From Trichosphaerium sp. ATCC 40318 (taxonomy: Eukaryota; Protista; Tubulinea): 64,000 bases of DNA. The number at the start of each line of letters is the position of its first letter. Position 1 is the stretch's first letter. Of this stretch, positions 14,089 to 45,652 are shown piece by piece. Under the pieces are notes generated by a model. The model was given only the letters and a program-made list of their open reading frames with translations, was not told where the DNA came from and did not search any database. Location: assembly GCA_038496445.1 (NCBI GenBank), contig JALMLS010000194.1, positions 1 to 64,000 of the forward strand, given 5' to 3'. Made by a program: the position numbers and the translations under genes.

Positions 14089-15073
14089 TTACAATTGTTT
14101 GTCTTGGTACTCAATAAAGTCAAGACGCTCAAGTACAGTTAATCCAAGTCTTTTCATAACCTTTCCTGTGACATCGTTCAAGTCAACGCACATACGATTC
14201 AGTTTGGATCCAAATTTTTGTGCTCTTGATTTGTCAAACCCTGCTGATATCAAAGTACTCACCCACTCAATTTTTTCACTTGATTGTACGGTTCTTTCAG
14301 ACGGTTTCGGCTTCTAACAGAAGTGAGTATAATCAATAAAAAACGGTAGCTTGTACATTCACTTTAGCAACATCTGAATGAGTTGTAACAAATGGTGTAC
14401 TAGATAAGTTGATGGTATTCTAAAAACCAGTTAATTAATACAAAATAAACATTTTTTATATTGATGTACCTTGTTGTCAATTACGGAAATATTTGGTTTA
14501 TTTATCCATGAATTTTGAGGCATTGCTGCTCTTGGATCATTTTGTATGTTGTCAGAACGAGTATCATCATTTGGTTGGTCATACTTCTTTATCACTATTA
14601 GCTACACTATTTGATTAGAACATACCTTATTGTAGTCTTTATGGCTTTGACTTATGTTGAGGAAGTTGTTGTCTTTATTTTGGTGTATTTTAAAGGCTTC
14701 AAGGGCATCTTGAATGATATCAAGGTGATCAGGAGCATCTCCAAACTTGGTGTAATCACGATTGGGATCAACCACAGCTTTTGACAAGTACTTATCTTTT
14801 CGGTCTTCTTTTACCTCTGCATTTATTGCTTTCACAGCATCATCGTTTTTATCTTTTGCGATTACTTTATTGGCTGGTTTAAAGTGCTTGTAGATTGTGA
14901 GACAAAAAGAAAGACAAATAAGATTTCAAAGTACCTTTTCATAATTGGTGAATGTTAACTTTTGTCGTGTTGATTGACCATAATTGTTATTTCCACCTGT
15001 GACCAACTGAAAGTCATGAGATATTGCCAAGTAATGATATGCTTTATTGGCAAACTCAAGATATTTTCCAGGT
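14089..15073 (-). pseudogene. RCC1-linker-SAM copy C, 5'-truncated (only the last ~140 bp of the RCC1 exon remain), class II SAM
   Basis: Homology to the other copies stops abruptly at 15073 (..TTTTCCAGGT|CAGG). Exon 2 KEDRKDKYLSKAVVDPNRDYTKFGD is present. Last exon EWVSTLISAGFDKSRAQKFGSKLNRMCVDLNDVTGKVMKRLGLTVLERLDFIEYQDKQL*. Confidence 0.8.
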
Positions 15074-15293
15074 CAGGATAGGGTTCGCACGTGAGCGATA
15101 ATCTAGATACGAATAGAGTTTTGAATTTGTAAAACACAGTTTCAACCTCAAATAATACATCCTTGACGCTCACTGCTTCAAGTGTAGTGACTAAGCTAAG
15201 TCACTATTACGGTTGAACTTATTCAGTTTGTAGTTAAGCATCAAACTTGTAATTGACATATAAAGAACGTTTAATCGCCTGTGAGGTTGAATA

Positions 15294-18260
15294 ATGGCAC
15301 ATAAGGTGCTTTTAATAGTATATTTATTTTCTATGGCTCTGTGTGTACTGTGTGACTGCGCACCCTATATACACAATGTTACAGGAACCCCGTTTAGGTA
15401 CGCGCAATACAAAAAGATTAATCCGAATCAAAACTTCGCTTTTGCTCGCAATGCACTTCTATGCGCCATTTTTACTGCTATTGAGTATTTATAATCACTT
15501 TAAAGAAAGTTTTCACAAAGTGTTGTTTACGCTAACAGAAGTAATTCTTTGTTAAACCATCTGTACACTAAAAAAACACCATCATCACGCGTTGTAGACG
15601 TTTTTGATTGGAAAACAAGTTTTAGAGAGAAAAAGAATTTGAACTCGTCTTTTGTTTGCTATCGCTTTCTTACGTTTTATTAGGTGCGACAGCGTAATTG
15701 AAAATCAATTAATCGTCTTCCTTCCCGAAAATGAAACGCAAGCATCAATACAATCGTACGACCTTTTAATTACAAACAAACAACACCTAGAATACTGTAC
15801 AGCTCGAAATCAGCAAAGATTAGACGGTTGTCTATTACCTATTTACTTTTTTGTTCGTCGTTGGCTTACAGCAGCTTAGCTCGATTGAAAAGCAATTTCA
15901 ACAGCTAGATATCTTGGATTTCGTTGGTGGCGCATCGTGCAAGGCATCTGTTGTGTTGTTCGGGTGTCAAAGTGCTTTTAAAACATGCAATGATTCGTTT
16001 CGTGAAGGTTTTTCTCTACCTTGTCGAGATGCCTGTGATGATATTGCTCTTCAGTGCTCTCCATTCTTATCGCTTGGAGATGTGGATTTACCAGATTGTG
16101 ATGTGGTGTCTCAGGAATGCAATGGCACCACAACCAATAATGCTACAGGTGACTGAAGCCTATTTTTGTGTCATTTTTTTCTCGCGGTTTAATTTCTTCC
16201 AAACACCATGCCTACTCATGCTTAATACTGTAGTGGGCGCTTTGACTTGCTTCCCTCCACGTTTATTACCGGACGTAGAGTCAACAGAATACCTATATAG
16301 TATGTTCCTTACTTCCAAAGAAAGCTACTTGGAAGCAAAAATAATATTTTGTTTAGATGAAGGACCTTGTTATTCTTGTCCTCCTACAGCGTTCTCAGAC
16401 CGATCACAGAATATAATAAATATATTCACTGCAATTGTAAGTGGGTTAGGGTCTTTATTAGCGTTAGGAAGCTTCTTGATGTTCATAGGAAGTCCGAAGT
16501 AAGTACCATCAATAGATCGCTTTTTCATGCTAACTTTTTTTTTTTCCGGTTTCGGAAATTCCAAACTCAGTTCTTTCCAATCATCACAGCAGATGCTTTC
16601 GCTACAGGAGTCTGCTTATTTGTATCTATACTATCACCAAACTTTTTTATTTGTGAAAACAAAGCGAGGTTAGCTCATACATGGCATGCTCCATGTACAA
16701 TTCAAGGTGAGTTAAAATATTTTAAAACAGTAGCAATTTCTGATCCCAAAAAATAGGTGTTTTTGTTATATTTGCTGCACATCAACTTATTATTACGTGG
16801 TCAGTAATGGCTACAAATCTTGGCTATATAACTTTCCGTGGTACCAAGCTTGTGAGTGGTAAATTTCCGTTACATTATAGAATTGTACGTTTTACTCTGT
16901 CCATCGCCTCTACAGAGAGTAATGGGTCTTTAGATTGTTTATTGTATACTTTGGGGTATACCAGGAATATTCACTTTCATTGCTTTGGTAGGCGGATATA
17001 TTGAGGCAGTTCCTGGACTACCCTTTTGTTTCAGTACGTGATAAACTTATTCTTATTTTTTTTTCTTTTTTTCAGCAAGCGATGAAAAAATGTTTACTGT
17101 CACGTGATTTTGTTTTACTATCTGTGATACCGAAAATGAACACATAGATATTATGCTTGAAACATTTACGTTACAGCTAGTACCTACAATAGCACTATGC
17201 TGCCAAACAAAACCAGATTGTCGTTCAGTTTTCTTATTTTGTTTTAAGTTACAATTGGAGATGACTGGGCTCAATGGATATTTTACTTTGGATTACCGTT
17301 GATACCAGCTTCATTTGTAGGAGTTATTTCGCTTGTTTATATGCTCTATCATATCTACAAGGTACCATACAAAGTCAAAGTTTTATTGGAAAAAAATTAA
17401 CTTTGAATTTTAAAGCAAAGAAATTTGGCAGCTGACTCGAAGTCTAAAATGCAAACAAGAAATCTTATCATAGCACATCTTGTTTGTTATTTTTGCACGT
17501 TAATGTATATAGTAGGGTACACGCTACACGTTTTTTTTTCCACCAGTGGTTTTATGCCAATAGCTTTTTGATTAATTTTTTTTGTTTTTTAGGTTCAGGG
17601 CTTACACTGAGTCTCTATCGGGCTTTGGACTTAACAAGTTGGTAACATGTTTACAACAAAATACAGGTAACGTAGATAAATGTTTTACAGATGATTTCCT
17701 ATCCTTACCAGCTACGCTCCTGTTTGTCTTTTGTATTGGTGGTACGTTTTTTTATTTACTCATATTGGACTCAAACAAAAAGACTGGAACAATCCTCCTT
17801 CAGCAGTAGTTACTTTGCACTTTGGAAACAAGAAATTTACTTGCATCAAACGTCAGTTGATTTATCCAGTTTAATACTGGCGATAGTCATAGAACAACGC
17901 TTATTTTTTTTAAAGAAGTAAAACTTGTTCTTTTTTGACCACGTGGAGAATTTTCTATGAATACATTCTTTGCTCGCTTATTGTTCTTGATAATAATATT
18001 AACTGGGTTTAGGAAATGGTATTATTTTGTTCATAGCTTTTATGTTTGGCAGGTAATCAAAAAGAACAACTTGCTGCATTTTCCAACTTTTTTTTTTGTG
18101 ATGATATCACTTTTCACCTGTTTTTAGATCATATCGGCAATTGATCGCTAGTTATTTCTGTCCTATATGGAAAGCAGCTGGTGGAAGCACTCTTTTTACC
18201 TCATCAGAGAGTAGTACTACATCAGTTATAATGGGACAACAAGGCTCATTTCAACAATGA
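15294..18260 (+). CDS. Frizzled/Smoothened-like GPCR with cysteine-rich domain, multi-exon
   Basis: Signal peptide; CRD-like CKASVVLFGCQSAFKTC...LPCRDACDDIALQC; several hydrophobic TM exons (IFTAIVSGLGSLLALGSFLMF, APCTIQG, GLPFCF). Stop TGA at 18258-18260. Start and exon boundaries are approximate. Confidence 0.7.
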
Positions 18261-18485: not shown

Positions 18486-20585
18486 ATGACTACTGAACAG
18501 CTGCCTAAAGAGATTTTATCATCTATTCTTTCCGAATTGCCGCTTTGCGAGTTGAATAGAGTGTCGTTGGTTTGTAAGTACGTGATTTTGGTTTAATTAG
18601 ATAAATAACGGTATACAGACGCTGGTCAGACACGTTTAGTAATGAACGGCTTTGGAGGACCCAATTTCGTTCTAGGTGGATGCCACAAAGCGAAGATGTT
18701 CCAAAATCGCATAGACTAGCGTCTAAAACATGGAAAGAGGTAATACATGGCAAAAACAAGCGTTAAAACTCACAATATTACAAGACGTACATTAAACACC
18801 ATATAACGAGTACATGGGATTATATTGATACACGTATAAAGCTTGACGAAGTGCGTTTGGGCAAAATAATGAAATGACACACTTGGCGTTAACGTATATT
18901 TTTTTGAAGGTATGGAACGTTAGTTGGAGTCCAAACGGAGAATATCTTTGTGCTTCAGGCAAGTCTACAAATACCTGCTTTTTTTTTTTTAAAACCTTCT
19001 TCAACAATGACACGTACAGTGGTCGTTCCATAGGACCATGGATGATCTCCTCCAGCGACCACTATGTTGTCATGTTTGTTGAGGTTTTATTTCTTGAAAG
19101 GTACAAGACGTGTTAATTAGTGTTACAGGCGCACATGGTATAAGCTTGTTTAAACTAGAAAATGATGAACTAGTATCTTGGCTTGACCTGGTAGATGGTA
19201 GAAGTGCTGTATCTTCACATAAATGGTCTGAATGTAGTAATTACCTTGTCTATGCTATGAAAGTACGTCAAGCACATTTTTTTTTTGTCACGTGATTTAA
19301 TTTAACCAAACTACAGGACAATGAAGTATGTACTATTTGGTACATGAAAGAGGAAAAGTATGTTGGAACGTTTGATGCGTCACCTTTTGATATAATGCCG
19401 CAGTTTGTGACAATAGAAGATAGGCTCTATTTGCTTACAAGTAAGATTTTCTTGGTACCTTTTTTTTTTTTTTTTTTTTCTTCTTTTTGTTATGTCTTTC
19501 TTTCTGCCTTTCTCTTTATGCTATCTATCTTGTTTTTTACTCATGTTGTTTCAAAGATTGTATTCATAGACGTCAAGTAGTTTTTTCAATATATACTATC
19601 TCTAATGGTAACTTGTTACCTTACAAGGTGGATGACTTTGGGATGACAATTCATAAGATGATACCACAAAAGTATGTATCTGAAATATGGTATTATACAA
19701 TATCAGGTCTGATGGTAACCAATGATCAGAAATATCTTGGCACGTGACAGAATATAAGTCTTTCACGTTTTTTTCGTTTTATTCACAAAAATATCACGTG
19801 ACTTCAAGTTTTTTTGTACTAATTTGGTGGTGACGTTTAGTCGCTTCTTGTTTTGATGAGATAGGTGGTTCAGATTATAAGATAAGCATAGTTGTCTATG
19901 AAATAAGCATGCTCTTCTCAGAAGAAACGAATGTGCTTAATTTTGATAATGCTTATTTACATGTACACGCGCCAGGAGATATTGTTGGATTAGTATGTTC
20001 ACCTGATTCGAAATCTGTGCTAGTAACGTATGTCTGTACAACACTTTTTGCTGTATTTTTTTTTCTCCAATTTTGAAGCTCTTTCGTTCAATTTCTTTGT
20101 TTCTTTTGTCCTTATTTGTCAATTTAACCTCTTATTCAGTTTACGTGCTATTACTGAAGAAGGCAAACTTCTTGAGGATTTACATATAGTAGAAATGTCG
20201 TTAGAGGATGGATCAATGACGACTATTGTTAATACAAAATGTCTTCATGGTGGAGGAGCTGATGTGTTTTTCATTTTTCCTTCATACTCCAATGACGGTA
20301 ATTATATTCTATGTGGTGATAATCATGGGAAAGTGGGTATTTTCACTAGAGGTGGAATAAAGCTGGCTATAATGGAACACAGTAAGTAACAAAAAATGTT
20401 GTGTGGCTTGTTTTTTTTGTTTTCTAATTTTTTTCTTACAAGAAATGAAAAAGCTTGTAAACCAAATATCTTGGCACCCGATAAAAGAAATGTTTGCAAC
20501 TGGATGTGATGATTATACTGTAAAATTATGGAAACCAAAAGCATCCATCGCTCCTCAAAAAGTGCAAGAAACGGAAGAAAACTAA
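18486..20585 (+). CDS. F-box / WD40-repeat protein, multi-exon
   Basis: N-terminal F-box MTTEQLPKEILSSILSELPLCELNRVSLV...RRW....LWR; WD repeats VWNVSWSPNGEYLCAS, YSNDGNYILCG, VNQISWHPIKEMFATGCDDYTVKLW. Confidence 0.8.
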
Positions 20586-20958
20586 TGATTTGATGTCATA
20601 TATGAAGTAAAAAAAAAAAAAAAGCTGTTCTGTGTTTGTCATTCGATTATAAACCTTGTAGTAAAAATATAGTACTAGCTGTATCAAGTTGGTGGCATTC
20701 TGTAAGAAATAGCGAGTTGTCACATCTACCAATCAACAAATCTAACTAACGACAGAAGCTTTCATCAATTGATAATGGAACAATATTTTCTACATTGAAA
20801 TTGTTTGTTAACTGTTTTGATAATACGATTGATTTGCTTGTACTTAGCGAATTTATTGAAAAGGTTTTTGTGTACAATACAAGTATTCTGACTAATTTGC
20901 TATGCTAATTCATCAAAAGGTGTAAATTCTCAGGCCTTCATTAACAATGATGTTCTGT

Positions 20959-22706
20959 TTATAGCATTTTGTTTTCCTTTGCTTTTATGACTTTGATACG
21001 CTCAATCACATTGAATCCAAGCTCTTCTAACACTTCAGGAATGATTTCTCTTTTCTTGATGGCTGCTTTGTTCATCAACGATCCAAGTTCTTGTGCTCTT
21101 TTACTTGAAATACCCAACCTCAACAATGTTGATTTCCAATCATATTTGGGAGTAGCGATTGATTGATTATCTTGAGGTGGACAGAACTCCGACTAAACGA
21201 ACAAAATTAAATGTGAAGAAAATAAAATTAAAACAAGACACCTTTGTGTGAGCGACTGAAACATGAGGCTTGTCATTCCATGATTGTTCAGATAAAAGTG
21301 ATGTGTCTACATCAAGTGGCAAGCGAGGATTGTTAACCTAAAATACCATGTGAGATACGTATTGCTTATTTTCTGATACTTACATTGTTGATGTATTCAT
21401 CTCGATTTTGGTGTATTTTAAAGGCTTCAAGGGCATCTTGAATGATATCAAGGTGATCAGGATCATCTCCAAACTTGGTGTAATCACGATTGGGATCAAC
21501 CACAGCTTTTGACAAGTACTTATCTTTTCTGTCTTCTTTTAACTCTGCATTCATTGCTTTCACAGCATCATCGTTTTTATCTTTTGCGATTACTTTATTG
21601 GCTGGTTTAAAGTGCTTGTAGATTGTGAGACAAAAAGAAAGACAAATAAGATTTCAAAGTACCTTTTCATAATTGGTGAATGTTAACTTTTGTGGTGTTG
21701 ATTCACCACAATGATCTCCACCTGTGACCAACTGAAAGTCATGAGATATTGCCAAGGAATGACATCGTTTATTGGCAAACTCAAGATATTTTCCAGGTAA
21801 TTTTAATGGTTTGTTTGATGAGAACGAATCAATCCATTTTCCTTCACCCCAACCAAACAAACAACCTTCATCATCAATCGCAAATGATGTATACACACCA
21901 GCATGTACAGATTTGATGTTATTGAGTCCTTTGATGATACCCTGGCCATAATCGTCATCAATACCCAACCCAAGACGCCCATCCTCGTTGTATCCAAAAG
22001 AAAATACTTGTCCTGACTTGAGGAGAACAAGTACATGACTAAAACCAATGGCAATATCAGTGGCATCATCAATACTTGGAACACGTGAAATTGTCTTTGG
22101 ATTCAAGAATAACGATTTATCTCTTGCTTCATCTCTTGTTTTTCCCCAAAGAAAGACATGACCTGTTGATGTCATTGCTCCACTTACATAACAATTAGTT
22201 TGAATTTTTTGAACATTTTGAAGATTTGAAATAACCGCTGGTGATGAAACTTTCGAATTGTCGAATGAATGACCCAATCCTTGATTTATGTTGTCTCCCC
22301 AAGAGTACACATGACCTGATTTTGATAATGCCATACTCACATAAAAGGCAGAGACTTTCGTGATATTGTTGAGATTTGGAACACGTGTTGGTGACGAAAC
22401 AGGTGACGCAAAGTCACCCAGACCCAATGCGCCACCTGAATTATATCCCCATGCATACACAATACCGTTTGAATCAACTGCAAGGCTATGTTCGCATCCA
22501 GCAGCAATACAGACGATATTTATGACTGATTTTATTGGTCTTGCGATAGAACTCGAGAATTCGTCTGTGTTACCCAATTGGCGCTCACTGTTTTGTCCCC
22601 ACGTGTAAACAAAGCCATCGTCTGCGATTACCATTGAATGTTCGCCACCAGTGGCCAAACGGTTAACATATTGTAAATTAACCGACGAAGATTGTGGCTC
22701 TGCCAT
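20959..22706 (-). CDS. RCC1-linker-SAM copy D (intact)
   Basis: ORF 21654-22706 is the RCC1 exon, followed by three spliced exons. SAM-like DWKSTLLRLGISSKRAQELGSLMNKAAIKKREIIPEVLEELGFNVIERIKVIKAK. Confidence 0.88.
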
Positions 22707-26693: not shown

Positions 26694-27401
26694 TGGCGTA
26701 TTTAACTTGTTACCGAGCGAATGAGGCTTTTTGACGCTGTTTAGCCTAAAGAGACAAAAAATAGCGAAGTTTCCGCAAAATATCAATTTTATTTTGAGGC
26801 TAGTTCTACTTTCAAAATCATGTGCACGTAATCAATTCTATATTGTTTCAAATTCTCCACTCCGCTTTATGTTAACGGGTAGGGTGCCTTCAAGGTGTTA
26901 AGGTATATAACGAGACACTAAAAGAATTTGAGTGAGTTTTCTCTGTGCAGCAATTTCGGTAAATTGTATAACGCTATTGAACTGCTGTGTCTTGTTATTA
27001 TCGTGTAATGATGGTAACATTAGTAACTTGCTTATATACTTCAAACTTCCAGTGTTTAGGTTTTCATGATGATTGAATTTGTTATCGGCAAAAACGTGCG
27101 CCAAGTCGGAACGTCTAATCTAAAATACAAACTTCGAGAAACTATTTCCAGTTTGTTATACACCTAAAACAAACGACTTTGTGCGACATCATGATGAAGT
27201 ATTTATAATAATGTTAGGTACATCTCTTCGCATACGATTGAGCCCTTCCGGACGCTACCCTATAATGGTATGTCACAAAACTCCGCTGATCTTTTTGTAT
27301 GACATTTTTTGAACATGTCCGATTTATGTTGACTTGCAGTTTTCAAGTTATTTCGATAAATAACGAGTATGCACGACAAGAAGCACCTCAACAAGAGCAA
27401 T

Positions 27402-30400
27402 ATGCGTTCCCTCATTACGATCGCTTTGATACTACTATCGCTTATCGCTATAACGCCTTCCGGGGCTCAAAATGTTATTCGGATTGGAAGTGTATACGCT
27501 ACAGAGGGATCAACAGCAGGCATTCACCTTTTGCTAAGAAACGGACAACAAATGTGGAAACAAACGGTTTGTTAACCTTTTAGAAAATCAATCAATTGTT
27601 GACCAACAACCGATAGGTAAACGCTCGGGGAGGTATTACTGTGAATGGAACGGCGTATACTGTCGAGATTATCGAACAAGGAGCAGGTAGAGTACTCCGA
27701 ATATGTTGTTTAAGTAGTATCCAACTTTTTAAAGATCGATTAAAGCTGTGCTTTATTTATAGTTCTATTTTGTCTTCGAACGGTTCTATTATTTAGAGAC
27801 TTATTCATCTTTTAGGCGATTCAGGAGATTCTGTTGCCAATGCTACAACGTTCCTTATTGAGAACAGAAACGTTGACTTTGTTTTATTGGTACGGTATTC
27901 AAATCACGTGGTTTTTTTTTCTTAATACACATCGTCTGACTACTTAAATACTACAGCCTATAACCACGCACTTGGGACTTCCTGGCGCTCTTGTGGCAAA
28001 CGATAAGAAAGTAAATTCGTTATTACGTACGTAATATGGATACGAACCTCTCAAGTTGTTTGAACAACTCAAAAACGAAGTTTTCTTTTTTTTTTTGTAG
28101 AAAACGATAAAATCAATCAAGAAATATTTTTCTTTTCTTTCGACTTTTTTTTGCTGATGCTTCGTTTTTTTATAGCCGGAGCTGCTACTCCGAGTAATTA
28201 CATTTGTGACGACCAACTTCTTTATCCTTGCACTCATCCTTTCGGAAGAAGGTTGACATATGTCTCTAGCCTTATACAACCTACTACAAGGTTCATGGTA
28301 GAAGCATTAAACTTGTTAGCAGTCTCTAACAACATTAAAACAATCGCTGTCTATTGGGAAGGTACAAACTGTCAAGTCTTCTTTCTTAATTCTTCCAAAT
28401 ACTGTGGTTGTTGTTGTTTGTTGACCTTTGTTTATTATAGATTCTGCATTCACTGAGTCTGTTGCAACTGGGGCTCTAAGAAGTATTCAATTTTTAGGCC
28501 TAGATCTTGTGTACAGTAAAGCTATCACATTCTCTTCAAATGCAACGAAAACTCGACCTGAGATTGAAGACATGATTAATGTACTTAAAGAAAAGAAACC
28601 TGGTACGTTGCGCAACATTGACTATCCATTATTATGTTATTATATCACACTGACTTGTTCGAAGATGTTGTTTTGGGAGGAACATTCTTCACTTGCGCCA
28701 TTTTCTTGGAGACGGCGAAGAAAATGAACTTCAATGCTGATGTACGTCTTGCTTCTAGGAAAACCAGTACTGTTTCTCATGGATTCGTTTTAGGCGTATG
28801 TTTTTTCAAGACCATGTAAGCCTGAAACAGTAGGACTAGACGCCAGATATGTCATTGCAACAGGCGGAAATGTATGTCCAGAACTCGATACTTTTTTTTT
28901 TTTCGGGTTTTAACAAACCGATTAAATTGATCCTTTACTTTAGTGGGATGATCGACTAAGAAGTGATCGCTATGATGAACACGATACAAGTATTCCGTAC
29001 CATCATTTTATTAGCAACGGGAGTGAAACTTCACCAATGATTTTCAGCCAAAAGTATGAAGAGCTTTACAGCGCAGCACCAACTGCCAATGGTATAACCT
29101 TCTTTTCTCTCTAACTCAATACTCATCTTCTGTTAACTAATCATAATATTCAGGTATGCTTGGATACAGCTCAGGATACATCATTCAATACGCTTTTGAA
29201 ACAGCAAAGCACGTGCTATCTTCTTTTGTTTTAGTCGATGAAAACCACCTTTTGTACTAACATTGTTTTTGTTACAGTTCTTTTGATGTCGATGAAGTTC
29301 AAGAAGCGATCAACACAATTGATATAACAGGGTTTTGTGGTGAGTATGAGTTTGATCAATACGGTCAAAATCTTGGAAGAAGCGGTTTAACTCACCAGAT
29401 TGACGAAAATCTGGAATACCATATTGTTGCTCCTCTGTTTGGTGTAACAAAGCAGTTTATATTCCCTGCACCAAAGTGGAACGAGAGACAAACGACATAC
29501 GGTTGGTATAGTACGTTAGCCTTACCACAATTCACACAACAATTTGACTAACAATGAGTTCTTCACTAGAGTACACAAGTGAACTTGTTATCCTCAGTAT
29601 TGTTGCAGCTTTTATTCTTATCACATTGGGTCTAATGGTATGGGTATTAATATTCCATAAACATAGAGTCATTCGTGCTTCACAACCCCTATTTGTTATC
29701 TTCGCACTGGTACGTACTATGAAAAAAAAAAACAAAACCATTTTTCTGTTTATATTCTTACTTTTGGTTTTTTAGATTGGAAGTATTCTTATGTACTCTT
29801 CTGTGTTTTTCTGGACTCTTCATACTGATACACTTCATTGTAATCTAATACGATGGTTACTTGCTGTTGGATTTGGTGTAAGTTCATTATCACGTTTAGC
29901 TGCAAATCCTCATACTTAAGTACCTTTAGTTGACATATGGAGCGATGTTTGCGAGGATTTACAGAATAGGACAAATCTTCCTTGTTAAGTCTTTGGATGT
30001 CTTTAAAATAACGAATATGATGATAATACCGATCGTTGCTGTTATTGTAAGTATAGAGATTGTTATTCTAGCCATATGGACAGCTGTAAGTGTTGGTCGT
30101 GCTGAACTTGTTGAAGAAAGACCATTTGTTCTTTCCGATGACTATTTTCAATGTGCAAATTCAACAAAGGATACCATATTCTTCTTCATCATATTTATCT
30201 TCAACGCTGGTGTTCTGATTTACGGACTTTACTGGATCTATAGAATATGGAGACTAAAGGCTGTTCTATATAACGAATCAAGGTAAGAGGAAAACTAAGT
30301 TTGAACAACCAACGTTTTTGACTTTTTTTTAGATCCATTGGATTCGCTGTTTACACTCTCACGTTTTTCATCATCATTATTATCATCATTCAAGTACGTA

Positions 30401-30821
30401 TTCAGACTATATCATTAATCTATCACATATTCATAATATTGTTAAGGTGTTTGGATCAAGTGATCGTGAGGTTGCGTTCATTCTTCGATCTTTGTGTCTT
30501 GTTCTTGGACCATTTATTTCAATAATGTCTTTGCTCGGCCCAAGAATGTATTACATGACAAAAACAGATGAAGAACTTGACAAGAGCGATAGATCTATGT
30601 CAATGAACCTAAGAATAAACTCAGCTACAACAAACAACCGAAGCTCAGTCAATTGCAGCGAAGAAGTTGATCTACAGAAAAAAGTTGAGACATTACAAAC
30701 ACGTGTTGCTGACTTAGAGAAACAACTAAAAAAAGCAAACGCAAATCCTGATGGTGGTGTTATGCAAACAGATGAAGAATCACAATCAAGCAAGTCATCA
30801 ATCGAAGAAAGTAGTGCGTAA
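27402..30821 (+). CDS. Class C (GABA-B-like / Dictyostelium Grl-like) GPCR, multi-exon
   Basis: Signal peptide MRSLITIALILLSLIAITPSGA; periplasmic-binding-type ectodomain (IRIGSV..., VNARGGI.VNG..Y.VEI); 7TM_3 motifs VIRASQPLF, ARIYRI..IF, YNESR.IG; C-terminal coiled coil. Confidence 0.85.
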
Positions 30822-31106
30822 GAAGCGCACAAGAAGCGTAGCATGTAAACTTAGATACTGTTAAAAAAAAATTATTAAATAAAAACAACTTGTATCCAAA
30901 GAGCCATTAAATACCACTATCACCAAAATACCAGCTGTAGAGGTATTTGCATACCAAGATCCATATACAAGCAAAAAGAGCATTGGTAAAAAAATGTTTC
31001 ATGTGCGGTTAACTAGTAAAAAAAGACGTCCGAGATTTGCCTACCAAAATGAAATTAGGTGGCTATTTTTCAACGCCAACAATTATTACGACCATATCAC
31101 GCGTTT

Positions 31107-32894
31107 ATGGCAGAGCCGCAATCTTCGTTGGTTAATTTACAATATGTTAACCGTTTGGCCACTGGTGAACACCATTCAATGGTAATCGCAGACGATGGCT
31201 TTGTTTACACGTGGGGACAAAACGATCACCGTCAATTGGGTAATACAGACGAATTAACGAGTTATATCGCAAGACCAATAAAATCAGTCATAAATATCGT
31301 CTGTATTGCTGCTGGATACTTTCATAGCCTTGCAGTTGATTCAAACGGTATTGTGTATGCATGGGGCCGTAATTCAAACGGGTCATTGGGTCTGGGTGAC
31401 TTTGCGTCACCTGTTTCGTCACCAACACGTGTTCCAAATCTCAACAATATCACGAAAGTCTCTGCCTTTTATGTGAGTATGGCATTATCAAAATCAGGTC
31501 ATGTGTACTCTTGGGGAGACAACATAAATCAAGGATTGGGTCATTCATTCGACAATTCGAAAGTTTCATCACCAGCGGTTATTTCAAATCTTCAAAATGT
31601 TCAAAAAATTCAAACTAATTGTTATGTAAGTGGAGCAATGACATCAACAGGTCATGTCTTTCTTTGGGGAACAACAAAACATGAAGCGGTAGATAAACCA
31701 TTATTCTTGAATCCAAAGACAATTTCACGTGTTCCAAGTATTGATGATGCCACTGATATTGCCATTGGTTTTAGTCATGTACTTGTTCTCCTCAAGTCAG
31801 GACAAGTATTTTCTTTTGGACACAGCTTGCATGGGTGTCTTGGGTTGGGTATTGATGACGAGTATGACCAGGGTATCATCAAAGGACTCAATAACATCAA
31901 ATCTGTACATGCTGGTTTGCATACATCATTTGCGATTGATGATGAAGGTTGTTTGTTTGGTTGGGGTTTTGGGAAATGGATTGATTCGTTCTCATCAAAC
32001 AAACCATTAAAATTACCTGGAAAATATCTTGAGTTTGCCAATAAACAATGGCATTACTTGGCAATATCTCATGACTTTCAGTTGGTCACAGGTGGAGATA
32101 ATTATTGTGGTGAATCAACACGACAAAAGTTAACATTCAACAATCACCAAAAGGTACTTTGTAATCTCATTCATCTTGCTGTCTATTTGACAAGTCATTA
32201 GCAAACAAACAAAGATACAATCGACACTCAGCAATTGGATGAACAGCCAATCAACAATTCATCAATCAAAGTACATCCATCTGAAGAGATGTTCATATCA
32301 AAAAAGGGTATTCGAGATGTACCTCAGAAATTTGGACAAACAGAACAAGATCTTCAGATTCTCGAAAATGCTCGTAATCTCATTCAATCCAAACAACAAC
32401 AAGTCGCCGATATCAAAGTACGTATACAAACACCAAACTATTTTACATATTTGTCTTATTGTAACACTTTTCAGGATGACTCTATTGATGATTTGTCCAA
32501 ATACAATCCACCCACCAATAAATCTAATCAACGACCACCTATAATCGATGTTGATGATCTTGTATCAAGACAATCATGGGTTCAAGATAAGTTTGAAACG
32601 ATCAACCTCAGCAACGTACAACCAATAATTTTATTTCCTCATTTTTTACTAAATTGGTTTTTTTTGTAGCCTTCAATCGGAGTACCATCTGAATCTTTGA
32701 CAAATAACCAATCTTCATGGGTTTCAAAATTAGTGGTGGCAGGGTTTAGCGAAACAAGATCACAAGAGTTTGGATTATTGTTGGATCGAATGTGCGTTGA
32801 ATTGAAAGATATGACAGGTGAGCTTATGAAAGAGATTGGGTTCACACCATCAGAACGTTTCAAGTTTATCAAATATCAAGACAGCCACATGTAA
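31107..32894 (+). CDS. RCC1-linker-SAM copy E (intact; divergent linker, class II SAM)
   Basis: RCC1 exon ending NNHQK|GT. Divergent exon 2 (FISKKGIRDVPQKFGQTEQDLQILENA). Last exon SWVSKLVVAGFSETRSQEFGLLLDRMCVELKDMTGELMKEIGFTPSERFKFIKYQDSHM*. Confidence 0.85.
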
Positions 32895-35983: not shown

Positions 35984-36739
35984 GGAAGATAATCGCAGTA
36001 TTTTACCTACGCAAACTGTACACGGTACGACCAAACCACATATGTGCTCAATGAGCTAAAAGCGAATTAAAACGGTATGATGTCCTACAAAGCTACACGC
36101 ATTACTGCCAAACACACGGCATGAATGCCTCAAACACTGGCTTTACATGCTTCAAAAAATCAACGTACGTGTATAACGTACTAGCGCCTACTCCACGCTA
36201 ACAAAAGCGCTATGGCAGCACCCAAACAGCAAGGCACCCAGTGTAACAATTAATAACGTTAAACCCTCCCCAAACTCCACCAGCGTTGCTGTAGGCTTTG
36301 TAAACGCCGCCAGGTGTCAACTATGTAAATAAAAAATTTTGCTATGGGGTTTGTTAAATCACGTGGGTTTGAAACGGTGATTCAAGCGTGAGGTAGATCG
36401 CATTAAAAAGGACATTTGCAAAATGTGTCATGAGTCAAATCCGTCAGATCTGACAGCTCAGCGGAAACTGGATTTTTTTTGCTAAAAGTCAGTCTCAAGA
36501 CAGACAATGTTAAAAAAAAACAACTTATATCCAAAGAGCCATTAAATACCACTATCACCAAAATACCAGCTGTAGAGGTATTTGCATACCAAGATCCAGA
36601 TACAAGCAAAAGAGCATTGGTAAAAAATGTTTCAGTATGGTTAACTCGTAAAAAAAAGACGTCCGAGATTTGCCTACCAAAATGAAATTAGATGGCTATT
36701 TTTCAAAGCCAACAATTATTACGACCATATCACGCGTTT

Positions 36740-38518
36740 ATGGCAGAGCCACAATCTTCGTCGGTTAATTTACAATATGTTAACCGTTTGGCCACTGGTG
36801 ATGAACATTCAATGGTAATTGCAGACGATGGCTTTGTTTACACGTGGGGACGAAACTATGAGCGCCAATTGGGTAATACAGACGAAAATGAGAGTTATAT
36901 CGCAAGACCAATAAAATCACTCATAAATATCGTCTGTATTGCTGCTGGATACTTTCATAGCCTTGCAGTTGATTCAAACGGTATTGTGTATGCATGGGGT
37001 TATAATTTAAATGGTGAATTGGGTCTGGGTGACTTTGCGTCACCTGTTTCGTCACCAACACGTGTTCCAAATCTCAACAATATCACGAAAGTCTCTGCCT
37101 ATGAAGTGAGTATGGCGTTATCAAAATCAGGTCATGTCTACTCTTGGGGATACAACAGATATCAAGGATTGGGTCATTCATTCGACAATTTGAAAGTTTC
37201 ATCACCAGCGGTTATTCCAAATCTTCAAAATGTTCAAAAAATTCAAACTAATCGGTTTGTAAGTGGAGCAATGACATCAACAGGTCATGTCTTTCTTTGG
37301 GGAACAACAAATAATAAAGCAAGAGATGAAGCAAGAGATAAATCATTATTCTTGAATCCAAAGACAATTTCACGTGTTCCAAGTATTGATGATGCCACTG
37401 ATATTGCCATTGGTTCTCGTCATGTACTTGTTCTCCTCAAGTCAGGACAAGTATTTTCTTTTGGACGCAACTACAATGGGTGTCTTGGGTTGGGTATTGA
37501 TGACAAGTATGGCCAGGGTATCATCAAAGGACTCAATAACATCAAATCTGTACATGCTGGTGTGCGGACATCATTTGCGATTGATGATGAAGGTTGTTTG
37601 TTTGGTTGGGGTAAAGGGAAATGGATTGATTCGTTCAGATCAAACAAACCATTAAAATTACCTGGAAAATATCTTGAGTTTGCCAATAAACGATGGCATT
37701 ACTTGGCAATATCTCATGACTTTAAGTTGGTCACAGGTGGAAATAATCATTATGGTAAATCAACACCACAAAAGTTGACATTCAACAATCACCAAAAGGT
37801 ACTTTGTAATCTCATTCATCTTTCTGTCTATTTGACAAGTCATTAGCAAACAAACAAAGATACTTGCAAATCCGAAGACAATGACATGAAAGAAGACAGA
37901 AAAGACAAGTACTTGTCAAAAGCTGTGGTTGATCCCAATCGTGACTACACCAAGTTTGGAGATGCTCCTGAACATCTTGATATCATTCAAGATGCCTTTG
38001 AAGCCTTTAAAATACTAAATCAAGAAAAAGATGTATTGTTTGTATTACAAAAATAGCTTTTAACACTAACGAACCTGGTAGACTGACAAAGTGTTTACTC
38101 CGTCACCTGATGAATCCAATCTCCAACCTCCAAATGACACGAATGAAATACCGCCACTAAATTCATGGATTGATAAGCCTCAAGTTTCTGTTGTTAACAC
38201 CAACAAGAAGGTAACCATCTTTGTTTTGCGTTCAGAAACAGAAAAATAACATAATTATTTTAGTCGCAATTCAGTCCACCACATGAGACTCAATCAATTG
38301 ATACTGTTGTTCAACCGACACAACCACAGATCGTTAATTGGAAGTTATTGCTTGCGAGGTTGGGCATCAAAAGCGAGAGAGCACAAGAACTTGGATTGTT
38401 GATGAACGAATTACGTATTAAACCTGACGACATTAACCAAGATGTACTGATTGAAATTGGATTCAGTTTGATGGAACGTATCAAAATCACCAAAGCGAAG
38501 CTTAACAACGTCATTTGA
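36740..38518 (+). CDS. RCC1-linker-SAM copy F (intact)
   Basis: RCC1 exon ending NNHQK|GT; an in-frame upstream ATG exists at 36692. Exon 2 QTNKDTCKSEDNDMKEDRKDK... SAM-like NWKLLLARLGIKSERAQELGLLMNELRIKPDDINQDVLIEIGFSLMERIKITKAK. Confidence 0.88.
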
Positions 38519-40697
38519 ATCATTAGGTGAACAATCAAAGAAGAAGTTACAAATACAAAGATGTACTGACGTTGTAGGAGAATAGAATAAATAGTTTTAT
38601 ATTTATTTTATCACGTGTATATCACTAGTTTTTTTTTTTTTTTTTTTGCGTTTTTTTTTGTTAGCCCCTACGTCCACTCTTCTTCAAACAGCTTGGTAGA
38701 AAACCTACCTACTGACTCTCATATGACACCAATGTGGCTCAGTGCTATTTCTTTCAAGAATCGTTAGAGATTAAGTTTTGGCAGGTGCTATAAAAGCTTA
38801 CTCGTTTACAAGGCACTAATCACGCTCACTTTTATTTTTTTTTATTTTCGGATTTGGTATCGCTTTCAAGGTTACTATGGTTACTAGGTATAAATAACCG
38901 CTTGGCGTACATGGGTTTGCACTACTTTTCGCGAAATTGATTAGAGCCACGATTGACTAAAAAATGTGCTGTTTTCTGCAAAAATGTTGTATAAAAGGTC
39001 TCCAAAAGAACAGATTTCGAAATTGATTATAGCCACGATTGGCTAAAAAAAGTGATATTTTGTATGTTATTGAAAAATTAAAGTCCTGTTTGTGATTGTG
39101 AATAAGCACTACATAGCACTTGCTTACATATGTTAATATTCTCATAGAGTGTAAACGTTTATTGTCGTTTATCAAGCTTCCAATACATTAACCAACAACA
39201 GCTGATTTCTTGATGCCATTTTTTTCCAAATCTGAAATTTGTTACCTTCTAAAAGTTGAAACGTTTTTTCTTGTGCTTGTTACAATTATGGCGCCACTAA
39301 TACCACAACATCTAAAGCATGTTTTTAGATGATTTTAAAATTTTCAAGTGCTACAAGTACGTGCATACCTCTGGGTGCTTCAGGGAATACTTGCCTAAAT
39401 GGCACTATTTTTTTGTGTACCATTTATGATAACCTATATAACTATATTTGCATATCATACAATGTGGAATTAAACAGTACCTATATAGTAGGCTACTGTT
39501 CAAATAACATTATGGATTAATATCCGAAAGTATGATGAGTGAAAGGCTCAGTGATTCTACGAAATTTTGTTTAAAAAACAGCGTTTTTGGGTGGCTCTTT
39601 TTTTTCCTTTTTGACTGTACATTAATCCATAGGCTGTGAATGTTTATGGAAAGACAGCTTTGATTTGGACAGGTAATATCACACAACAAGGTAAAACATA
39701 TGTTATTCATGTTACTATTTAGTACTAATGGTATTCAATAAAATCGATCAATTTTAGTCAAAGCCAATGCCGATATATCGGCTGTTGATAAACTACTTAC
39801 GTTTATTTGTCTGCGTTGCATCAACATACATTGGTGCCAACCAAGGGTTTACATAGGAGTTACACCTACCACTCTCAACATGAGAAGAGACAGGACGCCT
39901 ACTAGGCGGACTGTAATTGTCCGGTTAAGACCAACCGCCCAGAAAGGAGTGATCAGGTCAAGTTGTAAAAGCTGACCAAGTTCGTTGATGGTTGATAGCA
40001 ATGTCAGATTGGAGGAGCGCTGGCAGGCGCTCATATTTGTATTTGTGAGTGAATAAACGTTGAGAGCACATGCTGCCACCGTGTTGAATAGAGTTATATT
40101 CCAGCCAGACAATTCTGAGAAGAACCAAGAACTCAATTTGTTGCTTGGGTTTGAGTTTACCTAAGTTGTATAGTATACTAGAGTTGTACTTGAAAGATAG
40201 TTTAAGCGTAGAGCATAGAACAGAGGCCAGATTAGGCGGAGGGGAATAGGCTGTTGATAAAGCTGGAAACACAGAGCACAGGACCTTCAAATTTTTAACT
40301 GTCTTGACGGAACTTACAAGAACTAGCGAAAGTGACAAGATCTGGCGCTGCAAATTTTTGTTTAATTAATAACACGACTTTTGCTAAGGCATTCATGGAT
40401 ATGGCAATAAACTACTTTGCAAGAGAATTTGTATGTAGCAGCTGCCGCTTTAGCTGCTGTTTTTTCTTGTCAACCTTACCAGAACGCTCTGATGTGAGCT
40501 TGCTAATAGGTGCCACTGCCAAATGTGTTTTAAAAAACAGTGCAAAAACTTTATTTTGGCATCGCTGCACGTAGGTGATGCTACGGTAGCATTATTTTGA
40601 GTTTTTGAAACAAAGAGAGCAAGGATAACAATACGGACTATACAGTCACGTCACAGTCAATGTAAACAATACAGCTTTTGATCTCTGTGCAACTCAA

Positions 40698-40950
40698 CGG
40701 ACCCACGTTTTTTCCGAATTTTTCGAAAGACAAAATTCGAAAAAATAGAATTCAATACAAAAACCGAATGCCCTATACCCACCAATGGATCACTATATGT
40801 GAGCAAAGGTCGGGTTCTAGTTCCGAGCACAGCGAGGACCCGACCGTAAGTGAACCAGGCGCTTTCTAGTTTAGTGGACTGCCCTAGCTATGCATCTTTC
40901 TACGAATTCTATTTTTTCGAATTTTTGTTTTCGGAAAAAACTATGGCCCC
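40698..40950. mobile_element. MITE copy 2 (253 bp) with 8-bp TSD CAACTCAA
   Basis: Same element as 35723-35983 with a small deletion in the right TIR. CAACTCAA at 40690-40697 and 40951-40958. Confidence 0.9.
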
Positions 40951-42245: not shown

Positions 42246-42404
42246 TGCGGAAACCTTCTGCTCCTTGCGACCGTAGGGCTGCGTTAAAGGCGAGTTGAAG
42301 TTGAAAGCGTTTTGTTACTCTAAACTTGTTTAAAACTGCGTTTGTGGAAACCATCTGCTTTCTTGCGACCGTAGGGCCGCGTTAAGGGCGAGTTGATGTC
42401 GAAA
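42246..42404 (+). repeat. Imperfect ~60-bp GC-rich direct repeat (2 units, ~97 bp apart)
   Basis: TGCGGAAACCTTCTGCTCCTTGCGACCGTAGGGCTGCGTTAAAGGCGAGTTGA.. at 42246 and TGTGGAAACCATCTGCTTTCTTGCGACCGTAGGGCCGCGTTAAGGGCGAGTTGA.. at 42343. Confidence 0.75.
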
Positions 42405-42588
42405 ACTGTCGTTTGTATCAAGTTGGCAAATCTTTCTTTATTTTTGGTTTTAATCACTAACAGCGTGTGCTAGGCTGCTACTACTATGGATATTTTACAC
42501 AGTTTGATAACACAAAACGACTGTTTTCTGCAAAAATGTTGTACAAAAGGCGAGAATTCGTACTACATAAACCACCTCTCTAGTAAAC

Positions 42589-43138: not shown

Positions 43139-43591
43139 TCATAGTTTCACATCCTTTTTTAAAAGGTTTAGTTTTTTTGGTGTTCAGTTATTTTTCACAC
43201 AAGTTCGAAAAAAGTTCAAAAAAAATGTGTTTGTTGGGACTCCAAAAGGTCGTCGTGTTTAACAGATTCGAAGAAATACAACATGCCGCCAAATTTCGCG
43301 AAATGTAGTGCAAACCCCGTGAAAGTTGGTATGAGTGAAGCTTGTAATTAGGATAACTCTATGGCACCTTAGAGTAATACAATGTCGTCAAAGACCAACT
43401 TCAGTCTGAGTATCTTGTTTGTAATTCGTTGTTTCTTCACAACTCGATTCGCACCTCAATCACGTGTAGCAATGTTTTTTTTCTGAAAGTGCGTTTTGAA
43501 AAAGACTATTTATTCTAAACTACAGTAATCATTACAAAGGGCTGCCTTGGATATTTTTCTAATAGGCACATGTGGTGTTCTCCCTTATAAT

Positions 43592-45376
43592 TCAAATGAT
43601 GTTGTTAAGCTTTGCTTTGGTGATTTTGATACGTTCCATCAAACTGAATCCAAGTTCAATCAGTACATCTTGGCTAATGTCGTCAGGTTTAATACGTAAT
43701 TCGTTCATCAACAATCCAAGTTCTTGTGCTCTCTCGCTTTTGATACCCAACCTCACAAGCGATAACTTCCAATTAATGATCTGTGGTTGTGTCGGTTGAA
43801 CAACAGTATCAATTGATTGAGTCTCATGTGGTGGACTGAATTGCGACTAAAATAATTATGTTATTTTTCTGTTTCTGAACGCAAAACAAAGATGGTTACC
43901 TTCTTGTTGGTGTTAACAACAGAAACTTGAGGCTTATCAATCCATGAATTTAGTGGCGGTATTTCATTCGTGTCATTTGGAGGTTGGAGATTGGATTCAT
44001 CAGGTGACGGAGTAAACACTTTGTCAGTCTACCAGGTTCGTTAGTGTTAAAAGCTATTTTTGTAATACAAACAATACATCTTTTTCTTGATTTAGTATTT
44101 TAAAGGCTTCAAAGGCATCTTGAATGATATCAAGATGTTCAGGGGCATCTCCAAACTTGGTGTAGTCGCGATTGGGATCAACCACGGCTTTTGACAAGTA
44201 CTTATCTTTTCTGTCTTCTTTTAACTCTGCATTCATTGCTTTCATGTCATTGTCTTTGGCTTTGCAAGTATCTTTGTTTGTTTGCTAATGACTTGTCAAA
44301 TAGACAGAAAGATGAATGAGATTACAAAGTACCTTTTGGTGATTGTTGAATGTTAACTTTTGTCGTGTTGATTCACCAAAATGATTATTTCCACCTGTGA
44401 CCAACTGAAAGTCATGAGATATTGCCAAGTAATGATTTAATTTATTGGCAAACTCAAGATATTTTCCAGGTAATTTTAATGGTTTGTTTGATGAGAACGA
44501 ATCAATCCATTTCCCTTCACCCCAACCAAACAAACAACCTTCATCATCAATCGCAAATGATGTACATATACCAGCATGTACAGATTTGATGTTATTGAGT
44601 CCTTTGATGATACCCTGGCCATACTTGTCATCAATACCCAACCCAAGACGCCCATCCTCGTTGTGTCCAAAAGAAAATACTTGTCCTGACTTGAGGAGAA
44701 CAAGTACATGCTCATAACCAGTGGCAATATCAGTGGCATCATCAATACTTGGAACACGTGAAATTGTCTTTGGATTCAAGAATAATGATTTATCTCTTGC
44801 TTCATCTTTTGTTGTTCCCCAAAGAAAGACATGACCTGTTGACGTCATTGCTCCACTTACAAACAAATTAGTTTGAATTTTTTGAACATTTTGAAGATTT
44901 GGAATAACCGTTGGTGATGAAACTTTCCAATTGTCGAATGAATGACCCAATCCTTGATATATGTTGTTTCCCCAAGAGTAGACATGACCTGATTTTGATA
45001 ACGCCATACTCACATGAAAGGCAGAGACTTTCGTGATATTGTTGAGATTTGGAACACGTGTTGGTGACGAAACAGGTGACACAAAGTCACCCAGACCCAA
45101 TGCGCCATATGAATTACAGCCCCATGCATACACAATACCGTTTGAATCAACTGCAAGGCTATGTTCGTATCCAGCAGCAATACAGACGATATTTACGAGT
45201 GATTTTATTGGTCTTGCGATATAACTCTCATTTTCGTCTGTATTACCCAATTGGCGATAGTTTTGTCCCCACGTGTAAACAAAGCCATCGTCTGCGATTA
45301 CCATTGAATGGTATCCACCAGAGGCTAAACGGTTAACATATTGTAATTTAACCGACAAAGATTGTGGTTCTGCCAT
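43592..45376 (-). CDS. RCC1-linker-SAM copy G (intact)
   Basis: ORF 44285-45376 is the RCC1 exon. 3' exons and introns are nearly identical to copy F, in inverted orientation; TGA at 43592. Confidence 0.88.
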
Positions 45377-45652
45377 TTAAACGCGTGTAATGAGCTCAAA
45401 TTGATATTTAATTTTGATAGCCAAATCTCAACTATCTAGAGCGAATTTTGCTAAGCAGTGCCACTTGTTGTACACACGTAAATACGCATGGGAAACATGT
45501 TGTCACTAGTTTTAGTGCGTTTGTGTTATTTTGAAAGTCAAAAAAAAATCAATACTGTTTACGCGCAAAAAAAGTCAAATTTTTGCTGCGAAGAATTTAA
45601 ATCACTATTTCCTCCACTTGTTAGGCTTTGGCAGTACTGATACTGCTGTTGC

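Follow-up and report, generated by a model that had tools for sequence, protein, structure and literature searches.

How do members of a gene family that share a conserved first exon come to carry different upstream DNA and different 3′ ends? This question is raised by nine RCC1 gene copies, A to I, in the window analyzed here, a 64,000-nucleotide stretch of contig JALMLS010000194.1 from Trichosphaerium sp. ATCC 40318. An initial annotation had proposed that 5′ flanks, exon junctions, linkers and tails assort independently through crossovers in the RCC1 exon, including shufflon-like inversions, and the sequence features that it listed for the nine copies are all real. We consider it likely that the family evolves by non-allelic homologous recombination, i.e., by gene conversion, unequal crossover and one event between inverted copies. 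Recombination between look-alike genes would explain the mixed-and-matched flanks and tails of that first reading.

The RCC1–SAM family is represented by at least 117 matches in the genome, with about 50 copies of full length. Judged by sequence, it is a large, lineage-specific multigene family, and the window holds part of it. No close relative was found among 5.8 billion proteins, and the literature yielded nothing relevant on a hypervariable RCC1 family or on RCC1 expansions in Heterolobosea. The analysis covered the assembly of one strain, and all gene models are in silico. In these models, a gene has four or five parts: a single 1.05-kb RCC1-like propeller exon is followed by a short helical exon, zero to two small linker exons, and a last exon with a SAM-like fold. 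Introns are GT..AG, 40–68 nt long and, in agreement with the earlier reading, phase 0 throughout.

Domain assignments were obtained from searches and fold predictions run per exon, not on joined (spliced) proteins. The RCC1 exon matches the RCC1-like domain PF25390 above its curated threshold (193.4 bits, cut-off 150) and PF00415 in four stretches (118.7 bits, cut-off 21.7). Its AF2 model (pLDDT 91.3, pTM 0.90) contains 26 strands in a regular blade pattern, and these predicted strands are consistent with seven four-stranded blades, i.e., a seven-bladed β-propeller. Sequence searches were blank for the tail: Pfam returned no SAM family match at E ≤ 1 for three tail exons, and a profile of 32 tails found no PDB sequence match at E ≤ 10. 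The tail exon model (pLDDT 86.8) superimposes on Sla1 SHD2 (3idw) with Z 9.7 and an rmsd of 1.4 Å (61/66 residues aligned), and on twelve SAM domains with Z 5.0–6.8 across the whole domain, while unrelated rows reach at most 4.4. By fold comparison, the modeled tail is a five-helix SAM fold. The family copies, together with one gene outside the family, are arranged as follows.

3367..5408, minus strand, ATG at 5408: copy A, intact; RCC1 exon 5408–4347, exon 2, two linker exons, SAM-like exon 3600–3367
10726..12492, minus strand, ATG at 12492: copy B, defective; RCC1 exon frameshifted by the loss of 20 nt near 11585
14089..15893, minus strand: copy C, dead, start removed; 3′ fragment 15073–14089
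20959..22706, minus strand, ATG at 22706: copy D, intact; four exons, 22706–21663, 21614–21384, 21337–21242 and 21192–20959
27369..30821, plus strand: class C GPCR-like gene upstream of E, outside the family; 7tm_3 match 29930–30283
31107..32894, plus strand, ATG at 31107: copy E; RCC1 exon 31107–32153, 48-nt type-2 intron, divergent exon 2 and linker 32202–32615, class II SAM-like exon 32670–32894
36740..38518, plus strand, ATG at 36740: copy F; type-2 junction, class I tail, standard exon 2 shortened by an in-frame deletion of 21 nt
43592..45376, minus strand, ATG at 45376: copy G, tail to tail with F; type-2 junction, standard exon 2, class I tail
55775..57533, plus strand, ATG at 55775: copy H, intact; type-1 junction
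60243..61990, plus strand, ATG at 60243: copy I, hybrid and defective; 1-nt deletions near 60910 and 61056

Copy C has undergone a deletion of about 1.06 kb, and far-upstream DNA (15068–15893) now abuts the last ~55 codons of its RCC1 exon (15073–14935); its modules are junction type 1, standard exon 2 and a class II tail (14313–14089). Several copies have counterparts with orthologous flanks: L003 (C104:79905, right arm) for A, L022 (C104:71483) for B, and L015 and L005 for C. L012 (C353) is a whole-gene duplicate of E, and the 3′ part of the GPCR-like gene was co-duplicated with this E-type copy and also with L023. A search for an upstream coding exon fused to the propeller found none, and the 7tm_3 gene before E has its own stop 286 nt upstream.

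Alignment confirmed the module types. Exon 1 ends in TNYEK in six copies (A, B, C, D, H and I) and in NNHQK in the other three (E, F and G), and each of the two ends has an intron 1 of its own. Exon 2 likewise comes in two types, with KEDRKDKYLSKAV in every copy except E. Seven copies (A, B, D, F, G, H and I) have the RAQELG tail, and the remaining two, C and E, have the WVS..AGF..RMCV tail. Upstream blocks are also real, one of 54–57 bp in A and G and one of 232 bp in E and F (30875–31106 vs 36510–36739); F and G have gene body and tail in common and neither flank.

30875..31106, plus strand: E-type proximal 5′ flank, common to F, beginning 54 nt past the stop of the GPCR-like gene

The junction type corresponds to a ~130-nt block made up of the last five exon-1 codons, the 48-nt intron and about 15 exon-2 codons, and the homology of E to F and G stops 17 nt into exon 2. 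The two “SAM classes” prove to be homologous, with cross-hits at 30–40% amino acid identity; genome-wide, tails form at least three to four subclasses with intermediates, and those of C and E are just ~50% identical. Independent assortment of these modules proved to be an overstatement, since they are significantly linked: of the pairs with a common 5′ flank, 48–59% also have a common tail type, compared with 12–20% in the background (p ≤ 0.004), and each linker type occurs within a single tail type (100% nesting). Because subfamily homology ends in exon 2, linker, tail and 3′ flank form a block that moves as a unit.

Most exchange consists of very frequent conversion of short tracts, tens to a few hundred nucleotides long, within the RCC1 exon and the 3′ junction. 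Such conversion keeps the ~290 framework codons 97–99% identical in young copies and constantly reshuffles ~60 loop codons. In the window, framework codons are 97.4–98.6% identical between copies at the nucleotide level and hypervariable codons 63–77%, whatever the tail type. Recent duplicates with flanks ~95–99% identical show 60–75% identity at their hypervariable codons, where the family mean is 63.5%. Copies differ by 6–9% over the exon, and each exon can be composed of 18–25 exact tracts found in other copies, with 1–3% private bases; exact shared tracts are mostly shorter than 120 nt, with a maximum of 288 nt. The best-matching neighbor switches every 100–200 nt along the exon, and the exon-1 tree is a star in which 1 of 24 branches is supported. 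Two features illustrate the uneven similarity along single genes.

22142..22429, minus strand: 288-nt tract of D, exactly equal to E 31384–31671; the whole exon is ~94% identical
37889..38527, plus strand: tail arm of F, matching the inverted G arm 43583–44221 at 98% identity; the RCC1 exons are just 94–95% identical

The D–E tract is a recent conversion between inverted neighbors. Further patches lie at the junction, whose type differs between orthologous copies (L005 vs L015/C, and L008 vs H/L001); L008 (C546) is a whole-unit duplicate of H but has a type-2 junction, and in both sets the differing patch is identical to E/G. Crossovers had earlier been proposed as the main process, a role that instead falls to short-tract conversion, with the paralogous segments staying collinear. 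A first tree hinted that exon-1 similarity tracks physical position, and direct comparison rejected the idea: identity is 0.933 between flank-orthologues, 0.931 within a segment and 0.930 among others, and in AU tests trees uniting flank-orthologues were as good or better. The AU test rejected just one of eight groupings on the exon-1 tree because this tree carries little signal.

The fast divergence of the exon between recent duplicates might alternatively reflect hypermutation targeted to the loop codons, or new point mutations there under strong positive selection, with reassortment of modules playing a minor part. Differences do focus on the ~60 hypervariable codons, which diverge at least 17–25 times more than the flanks, and the PHI test is significant with these codons (p ≤ 0.001) and no longer so without them (p = 0.18), so that selection-driven homoplasy is not fully separable from conversion there. 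Against this account, 97–99% of each exon, including its hypervariable codons, can be assigned to exact tracts of other copies. Long exact tracts cross several variable slots (288 nt in D–E, 100–204 nt in others), and the junction patches take in the intron, which is beyond the reach of selection on residues. We therefore regard new mutation as an unlikely main source of the variation. Quite unlikely, too, is a dedicated process of templated diversification that targets the RCC1 exon at a high rate, such as break-induced conversion from more than 100 paralogues, possibly acting during clonal growth as well. If it existed, cells or lineages would differ in their propeller repertoire and in the 5′ flank and SAM-like tail joined to it, and the family would be a protist analogue of receptor diversification by gene conversion. 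Under the preferred reading of non-allelic recombination, exchange would be evolutionary, occurring in the germline of a unicellular organism, rather than a programmed switch.

Rarer unequal crossovers between the bodies of tandem genes yield hybrid genes, change copy number and re-pair flanks with tails. Three paralogous segments carry one, two and three genes at the same position. L002 joins an A-type 5′ part to a B-type 3′ part and L004 a B-type 5′ part to an A-type 3′ part, as seen in runs of diagnostic sites and in a matching spacer duplication or deletion. This pattern directly shows L002 and L004 as the reciprocal products, both retained, of unequal crossover. Switch points were placed by diagnostic sites, not by the ends of blastn alignments; breakpoints exactly at the ATG were discarded, since blastn alignments stop there only because family-wide homology does. 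The reciprocal hybrids and the four-gamete combinations of complex, unalignable modules present genome-wide uphold the claim that exchange within the conserved gene body re-pairs 5′ flanks and tails. C446 and similar small contigs might represent diverged haplotigs instead of paralogous segments; the series would then be an allelic structural polymorphism, with the mechanism unchanged.

A mosaic of this kind could in principle arise during assembly, if contigs were mis-joined through the conserved exon or haplotigs mixed. The exon is a ~1 kb repeat with more than 100 copies, and L033 and L034, 100% identical over 4.5 kb on two contigs, point to some redundancy in the assembly. We nevertheless consider an artefact very unlikely, as copies 6–9% apart with exact tracts of at most 288 nt offer matches too short to mislead long-read assembly. 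Moreover, gene order and flanks (94–99%) match across the three segments, which lie on two contigs, and the hybrids are reciprocal to each other, down to a spacer duplication that matches a spacer deletion.

Inverted copies have also recombined inside the exon at least once, creating the junction of a >20-kb inverted duplication. Crossover between inverted copies within the RCC1 exon, as originally proposed, is borne out at one junction, in copy I. Its 5′ flank and the first ~400 nt of its exon resemble L009/L052, and from about +1000 it is 98–99% like D. This junction is the inner edge of the inverted duplication (a palindrome), in which the order D-C-B-A is mirrored by I and the next four copies. 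The left arm extends from ~1888 to ~21715, with left–right alignments at 1888–15893 and in the D–I arms at 18979–21715.

18979..21715, minus strand: tail of D and downstream DNA, 98–99% identical to the inverted I 61235–63974; inner part of the inverted duplication

The arms have since diverged by 1–4%, and the inverted event is probably a one-off duplication, old and fixed.

A programmed, reversible inversion between inverted copies (F/G, D/E or D/I), switching the tail or promoter of each propeller within a clone, would have drawn on the same architecture. The window does contain inverted gene pairs with arms of 0.6–1.8 kb, among them the F/G arms (98% identical) and the D/E pair with its 288-nt exact tract, as well as the inverted-copy junction within the exon of I. 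The shufflon of plasmid R64, in which the Rci recombinase acts on sfx sites, similarly combines a constant N-terminal part with alternative C-terminal parts and inverted repeats. In contrast to R64, neither a site-specific recombinase nor short sfx-like sites nor promoterless cassettes were found here. The copies are independent genes, and all but the deletion derivative C have their own ATG (MAEPQ...) and distinct 5′ flanks. The repeats are whole gene bodies, and orphan tail exons are absent. Among ten non-RCC1 ORFs of 111–192 aa between 15.9 and 46.0 kb, a scan that split exons could escape, 7tm_3 was the only domain and no recombinase domain was detected. Nor does the assembly hold a haplotig or alternative isomer of 29–47 kb (the E–G region), for which the best match is the C353 paralogue at ~91–94%. 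There is no sign of reversibility. The arms of the inverted duplication are 1–4% diverged, paralogous segments are still collinear, and inversion between F and G would change nothing, both having the same tail type. The shufflon-like component of the earlier proposal is accordingly dropped, and we judge such a switch highly improbable. Whole-gene duplication with modules evolving at very different rates retains next to no probability: whole-unit duplicates occur (A/L003, H/L008, L005/L015 and E/L012), but we count this view as already refuted by four-gamete combinations among unalignable sequence types, the L002/L004 hybrids and the hybrid I. Identical or near-identical tails with different 5′ flanks, and vice versa, also speak against it, as do framework third-codon positions 96–98% identical where tails are ~30% identical in protein.

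Tandem gene clusters such as plant NLRs (e.g., RPP8), opsins, globins and KIRs evolve by unequal crossover and gene conversion. Like the RCC1 array, they contain patches of conversion and hybrid genes that come with reciprocal duplications and deletions; their coding regions are homogeneous although the flanks diverge, and their inverted segmental duplications terminate in paralogous repeats. What sets the RCC1 array apart is an extreme contrast: hypervariable codons are fully re-equilibrated while flanks are just 1–2% diverged. A parallel in domain type is the HNWD/het-d/het-e WD40 family of Podospora anserina (Paoletti et al. 2007, PMC1805685; Chevanne et al. 2010, PMC2873952). Both families have β-propeller recognition-type domains with a framework kept near-identical both within and between paralogues by concerted evolution, and a few hypervariable surface positions per blade whose variants are reshuffled between loci. 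The family described here differs in having an RCC1-type instead of a WD40 propeller and in its host, a protist without RIP. The unit exchanged is a tract in a fixed seven-blade exon, with no change in repeat number seen, unlike in HNWD, and positive selection is a candidate feature here. Also unlike HNWD, the family lacks a NACHT/NB-ARC domain and any other effector domain at the N-terminus: in every copy the ORF opens with the propeller, and the gene closes with a SAM-like domain. Upstream DNA is unrelated between copies, and the sole upstream Pfam match is the 7tm_3 domain before E, in a separate gene. Short templated tracts from many donors also build mosaic genes in the ves antigenic-variation family of Babesia, which undergoes segmental gene conversion (PMC7485966). 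Antigenic-variation families use one active expression site and act during infection; nothing in the RCC1 family sequences points to mono-allelic expression or somatic timing.

What is new is the family and its domain architecture, an RCC1 propeller with ~60 hypervariable codons and a SAM-like tail in more than 100 copies, while the recombination mechanism is textbook. The locus offers clean material for studying it, with both reciprocal crossover products kept, an inverted duplication whose junction lies inside the exon, and an internal clock in loop codons that re-equilibrate with the family pool while flanks diverge just 1–2%. Tail, linker and 3′ flank as one block with a re-pairable 5′ flank can guide annotators and experimenters on natural combinations, and the block structure also flags where gene models are mis-called. 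In the predicted propeller model, the variable slots lie in alternate inter-strand loops of each blade. Alternate inter-strand loops of a β-meander share one face. The putative hypervariable face may be a binding surface whose diversity is maintained by selection, and the SAM-like tail may mediate oligomerization or adaptor contacts; the names “sensor” and “output” given earlier to the modules are best read as tentative. The family looks like a recognition repertoire, directed at prey, symbionts, viruses or kin, in a little-studied amoeba lineage.

Six modules (5' flank, junction, exon 2, linker region, tail and 3' flank) were typed in 59 copies of the RCC1-SAM gene family. The initial annotation had proposed that 5' flanks, junction types, linkers and SAM classes assort independently, a view that the typing contradicts: pairs with a common 5' flank had the same tail type 48-59% of the time, compared with a background of 12-20% (p<=0.004), and linker type was nested within tail type in 100% of pairs. 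Recombinant copies nevertheless exist unambiguously. All four combinations were seen for 5'-flank types a/b with tail types a/b (L001, L006, L002 and L003, family copies at other loci), for junction types 1/2 with tail types a/c (L001, L007, L008, L005), and for flank types f/g with junction types 1/2 (L015, L005, H, L008). Since the module types are long and mutually unalignable, homoplasy is excluded for these four-way combinations.

The window is the opening 64 kb of contig C104 (214 kb), part of a eukaryotic assembly of 70 Mb with a GC content of 35-39%. By tblastn it contains nine copies of one gene, with A, B, C, D and G on the minus strand and E, F, H and I on the plus strand; a tRNA and Rfam scan of the window gave no match. 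Genome-wide, the family gives no fewer than 117 matches, and its full-length copies number about 50; 60 of the loci were retrieved. Two of these, L033 (C171:132390-136317, at a contig end) and L034 (C226:72816-77316), are 100% identical throughout the compared stretch, reflecting either a redundant contig overlap in the assembly or a very recent duplication. Sequence searches and folding were run exon by exon. Exon 1 (1044-1062 nt), which always starts with MAEPQ-like residues, encodes an RCC1-like domain (PF25390, 193 bits against a cut-off of 150), and its AlphaFold model (pLDDT 91.3) has strands patterned as a seven-blade propeller. Among 5.8 billion proteins no close relative was found, the best matches being generic RCC1 proteins at 29-33% identity.

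In the in-silico gene models, the RCC1 exon is followed by a 48-nt intron, exon 2 (195-231 nt), a linker exon (96-132 nt) with a QSW.DKP.VSV-like motif at its end, and a last exon of 225-255 nt. The phase-0 introns reported earlier for E, F and H hold for all predicted introns, which are GT..AG and 40-68 nt long. Linker exons are a repeated cassette ending in QSW.(D/N)KP.VSV (window 3669-4037 in A; also in D, F, G, H and B), always a multiple of three in length and present zero times in L012, once in D, E, F, G and H, and twice in A. In L012 (contig C353), L019 (C168) and L023 (C135), all that is left of the 48-nt intron 1 is 11 nt, in frame (GT....AG), and exons 1 and 2 thereby run on as a single fused ORF; the linker exon found in E is absent from L012. 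These changes look like intron and exon loss through deletion inside the family. The last exon has no sequence match in Pfam or PDB. A model from 32 tails (pLDDT 86.8) superposes on the Sla1 SHD2 domain (Z 9.7, rmsd 1.4 Å) and on twelve genuine SAM domains (Z 5.0-6.8), which justifies a predicted "SAM-like fold" as its label, though not Pfam membership.

Every motif and shared block previously listed was found in place. The junction type (TNYEK or NNHQK) is a block of about 130 nt that reaches from the final five codons of exon 1 across the 48-nt intron into exon 2, of which it covers about 15 codons; homology of E with F and G runs to 17 nt inside exon 2. Both proposed SAM classes (RAQELG and WVS..AGF..RMCV) are present; they are homologous at 30-40% identity and grade genome-wide into at least 3-4 subclasses, and C and E have tails that match each other at only about half of their positions. 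Copy C is dead, a deletion of about 1.06 kb having joined far-upstream DNA to the exon's last ~55 codons; B carries one 20-nt deletion and I two 1-nt deletions.

Among the window copies, the framework of the RCC1 exon (~290 codons) shows 97.4-98.6% nucleotide identity, with third positions at 96-98%, regardless of tail, and the hypervariable codons (~60) only 63-77%. In recent duplicate units (A/L003, L005/L015, H/L008) flank identity is about 96-99%, but that of the hypervariable codons only 68-70%, near the family mean of 63.5% at these codons; in the younger pair L025/L028 they are still 92% identical. Each exon is tiled by 18-25 exact tracts from other copies, with 1-3% private bases, and the closest copy switches every 100-200 nt. 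The exon-1 tree is a star, and exon identity is equal for flank-orthologues, neighbours and all remaining pairs. Copies that are otherwise orthologous differ in junction type through a patch identical to E/G, intron included. We read these sequence patterns as pervasive short-tract gene conversion of the exon. The PHI test reached significance only when the hypervariable codons were kept in, so parallel change driven by selection may contribute to the pattern.

Crossovers are rare, as segment order remains collinear. The minus-strand series D-C-B-A, occupying the leftmost 22 kb of the window, is mirrored on the plus strand by I, L015, L022, L002 and L003, reaching 83 kb, with 96-98.6% identity between the arms, and contig C446 carries a third copy of the segment. 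Gene number at the B/A position is one in C446, two in the left arm and three in the right arm, where the spacer is likewise duplicated.

Genes at the B/A position of the D-C-B-A segment
C446: L004, B-type 5' flank and A-type tail
Left arm: B and A, two genes
Right arm: L022, B-type
Right arm: L002, A-type 5' flank and B-type tail
Right arm: L003, A-type

Diagnostic sites place the switch at +943 to +1121 in L004 and anywhere from +1 to +1124 in L002. L004 and L002 form the pair of reciprocal products from an unequal crossover in the gene body. The proposed exchange within the conserved exon thus stands as recombination in the gene body, given the four-way combinations and reciprocal hybrids, but crossovers are not the main process. 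Directly 3' of the B tail, toward A, about 2.4 kb (window 8085-10511) are absent from the right arm and from C446, through either a left-arm insertion or deletion elsewhere.

Exchange between inverted copies likewise stood in part. I resembles L009/L052 (96-99% identity) over its 5' flank, for at least 700 nt, and over the opening ~400 nt of its exon, and the H-I pair has L008-L009 of contig C546 as its syntenic counterpart. From about +1000 as far as the window end, I is 98-99% identical to D. With an L009/L052-like 5' part and a D-like 3' part, I shows that the inverted duplication has its inner junction inside the RCC1 exon. The arms have diverged by 1-4% since; the junction is a one-off event and no demonstration of a reversible switch. 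Conversion is also visible between inverted neighbours, as D and E have a 288-nt exact tract in common, and F and G have tails 98-100% identical and exons only 94%. A shufflon-like system finds no support, with no promoterless cassettes at the array, no short inverted crossover sites, no recombinase among the ORFs scanned and no alternative isomer in the assembly.

Several features lie next to the copies. Upstream of E is a multi-exon class C GPCR-like gene (window 27369-30821, plus strand) whose front part encodes a signal peptide and the start of a ligand-binding domain, with a 7tm_3 match at 29930-30283 (E 1.3e-12); its C-terminal ORF (30447-30821) has its own stop 286 nt ahead of the E ATG, and the E-type copies on C353 and C135 were duplicated together with the 3' part of this gene. 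Between 46 and 71 nt 5' of the ATG, 10/69 copies carry the 15-nt motif TTTGGCTATCAAAAT or a two-change variant, which occurs in 0/334 control windows.

Sites of the 15-nt motif
Window 5454-5468
Window 45424-45438
Window 31036-31050
Window 36669-36683
Other loci: L002, L003, L006, L012, L051, L059

Carriers come from four or more 5'-flank types that are not otherwise related, and in L006 the motif is a small patch in a flank type that elsewhere lacks it; possibly the motif serves as a promoter element. Two dispersed repeats, window 40507-42520 (94-99% copies on C393 and C557) and 45432-46622 (94-99% copies on C194, C48 and C135), are probably transposable elements; ORFs within them had no Pfam match.

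The nearest analogue of the RCC1-SAM family is the Podospora HNWD/het-d/het-e family, whose WD40 repeats are under concerted evolution within and between loci and diversify at four surface residues per repeat (PMC1805685, PMC2873952). The present family differs in its RCC1-type propeller, the absence of NACHT and its SAM-like C-terminus. The mechanism is ordinary, as is recombination in clustered gene families generally; it is the RCC1-SAM family that is unusual.
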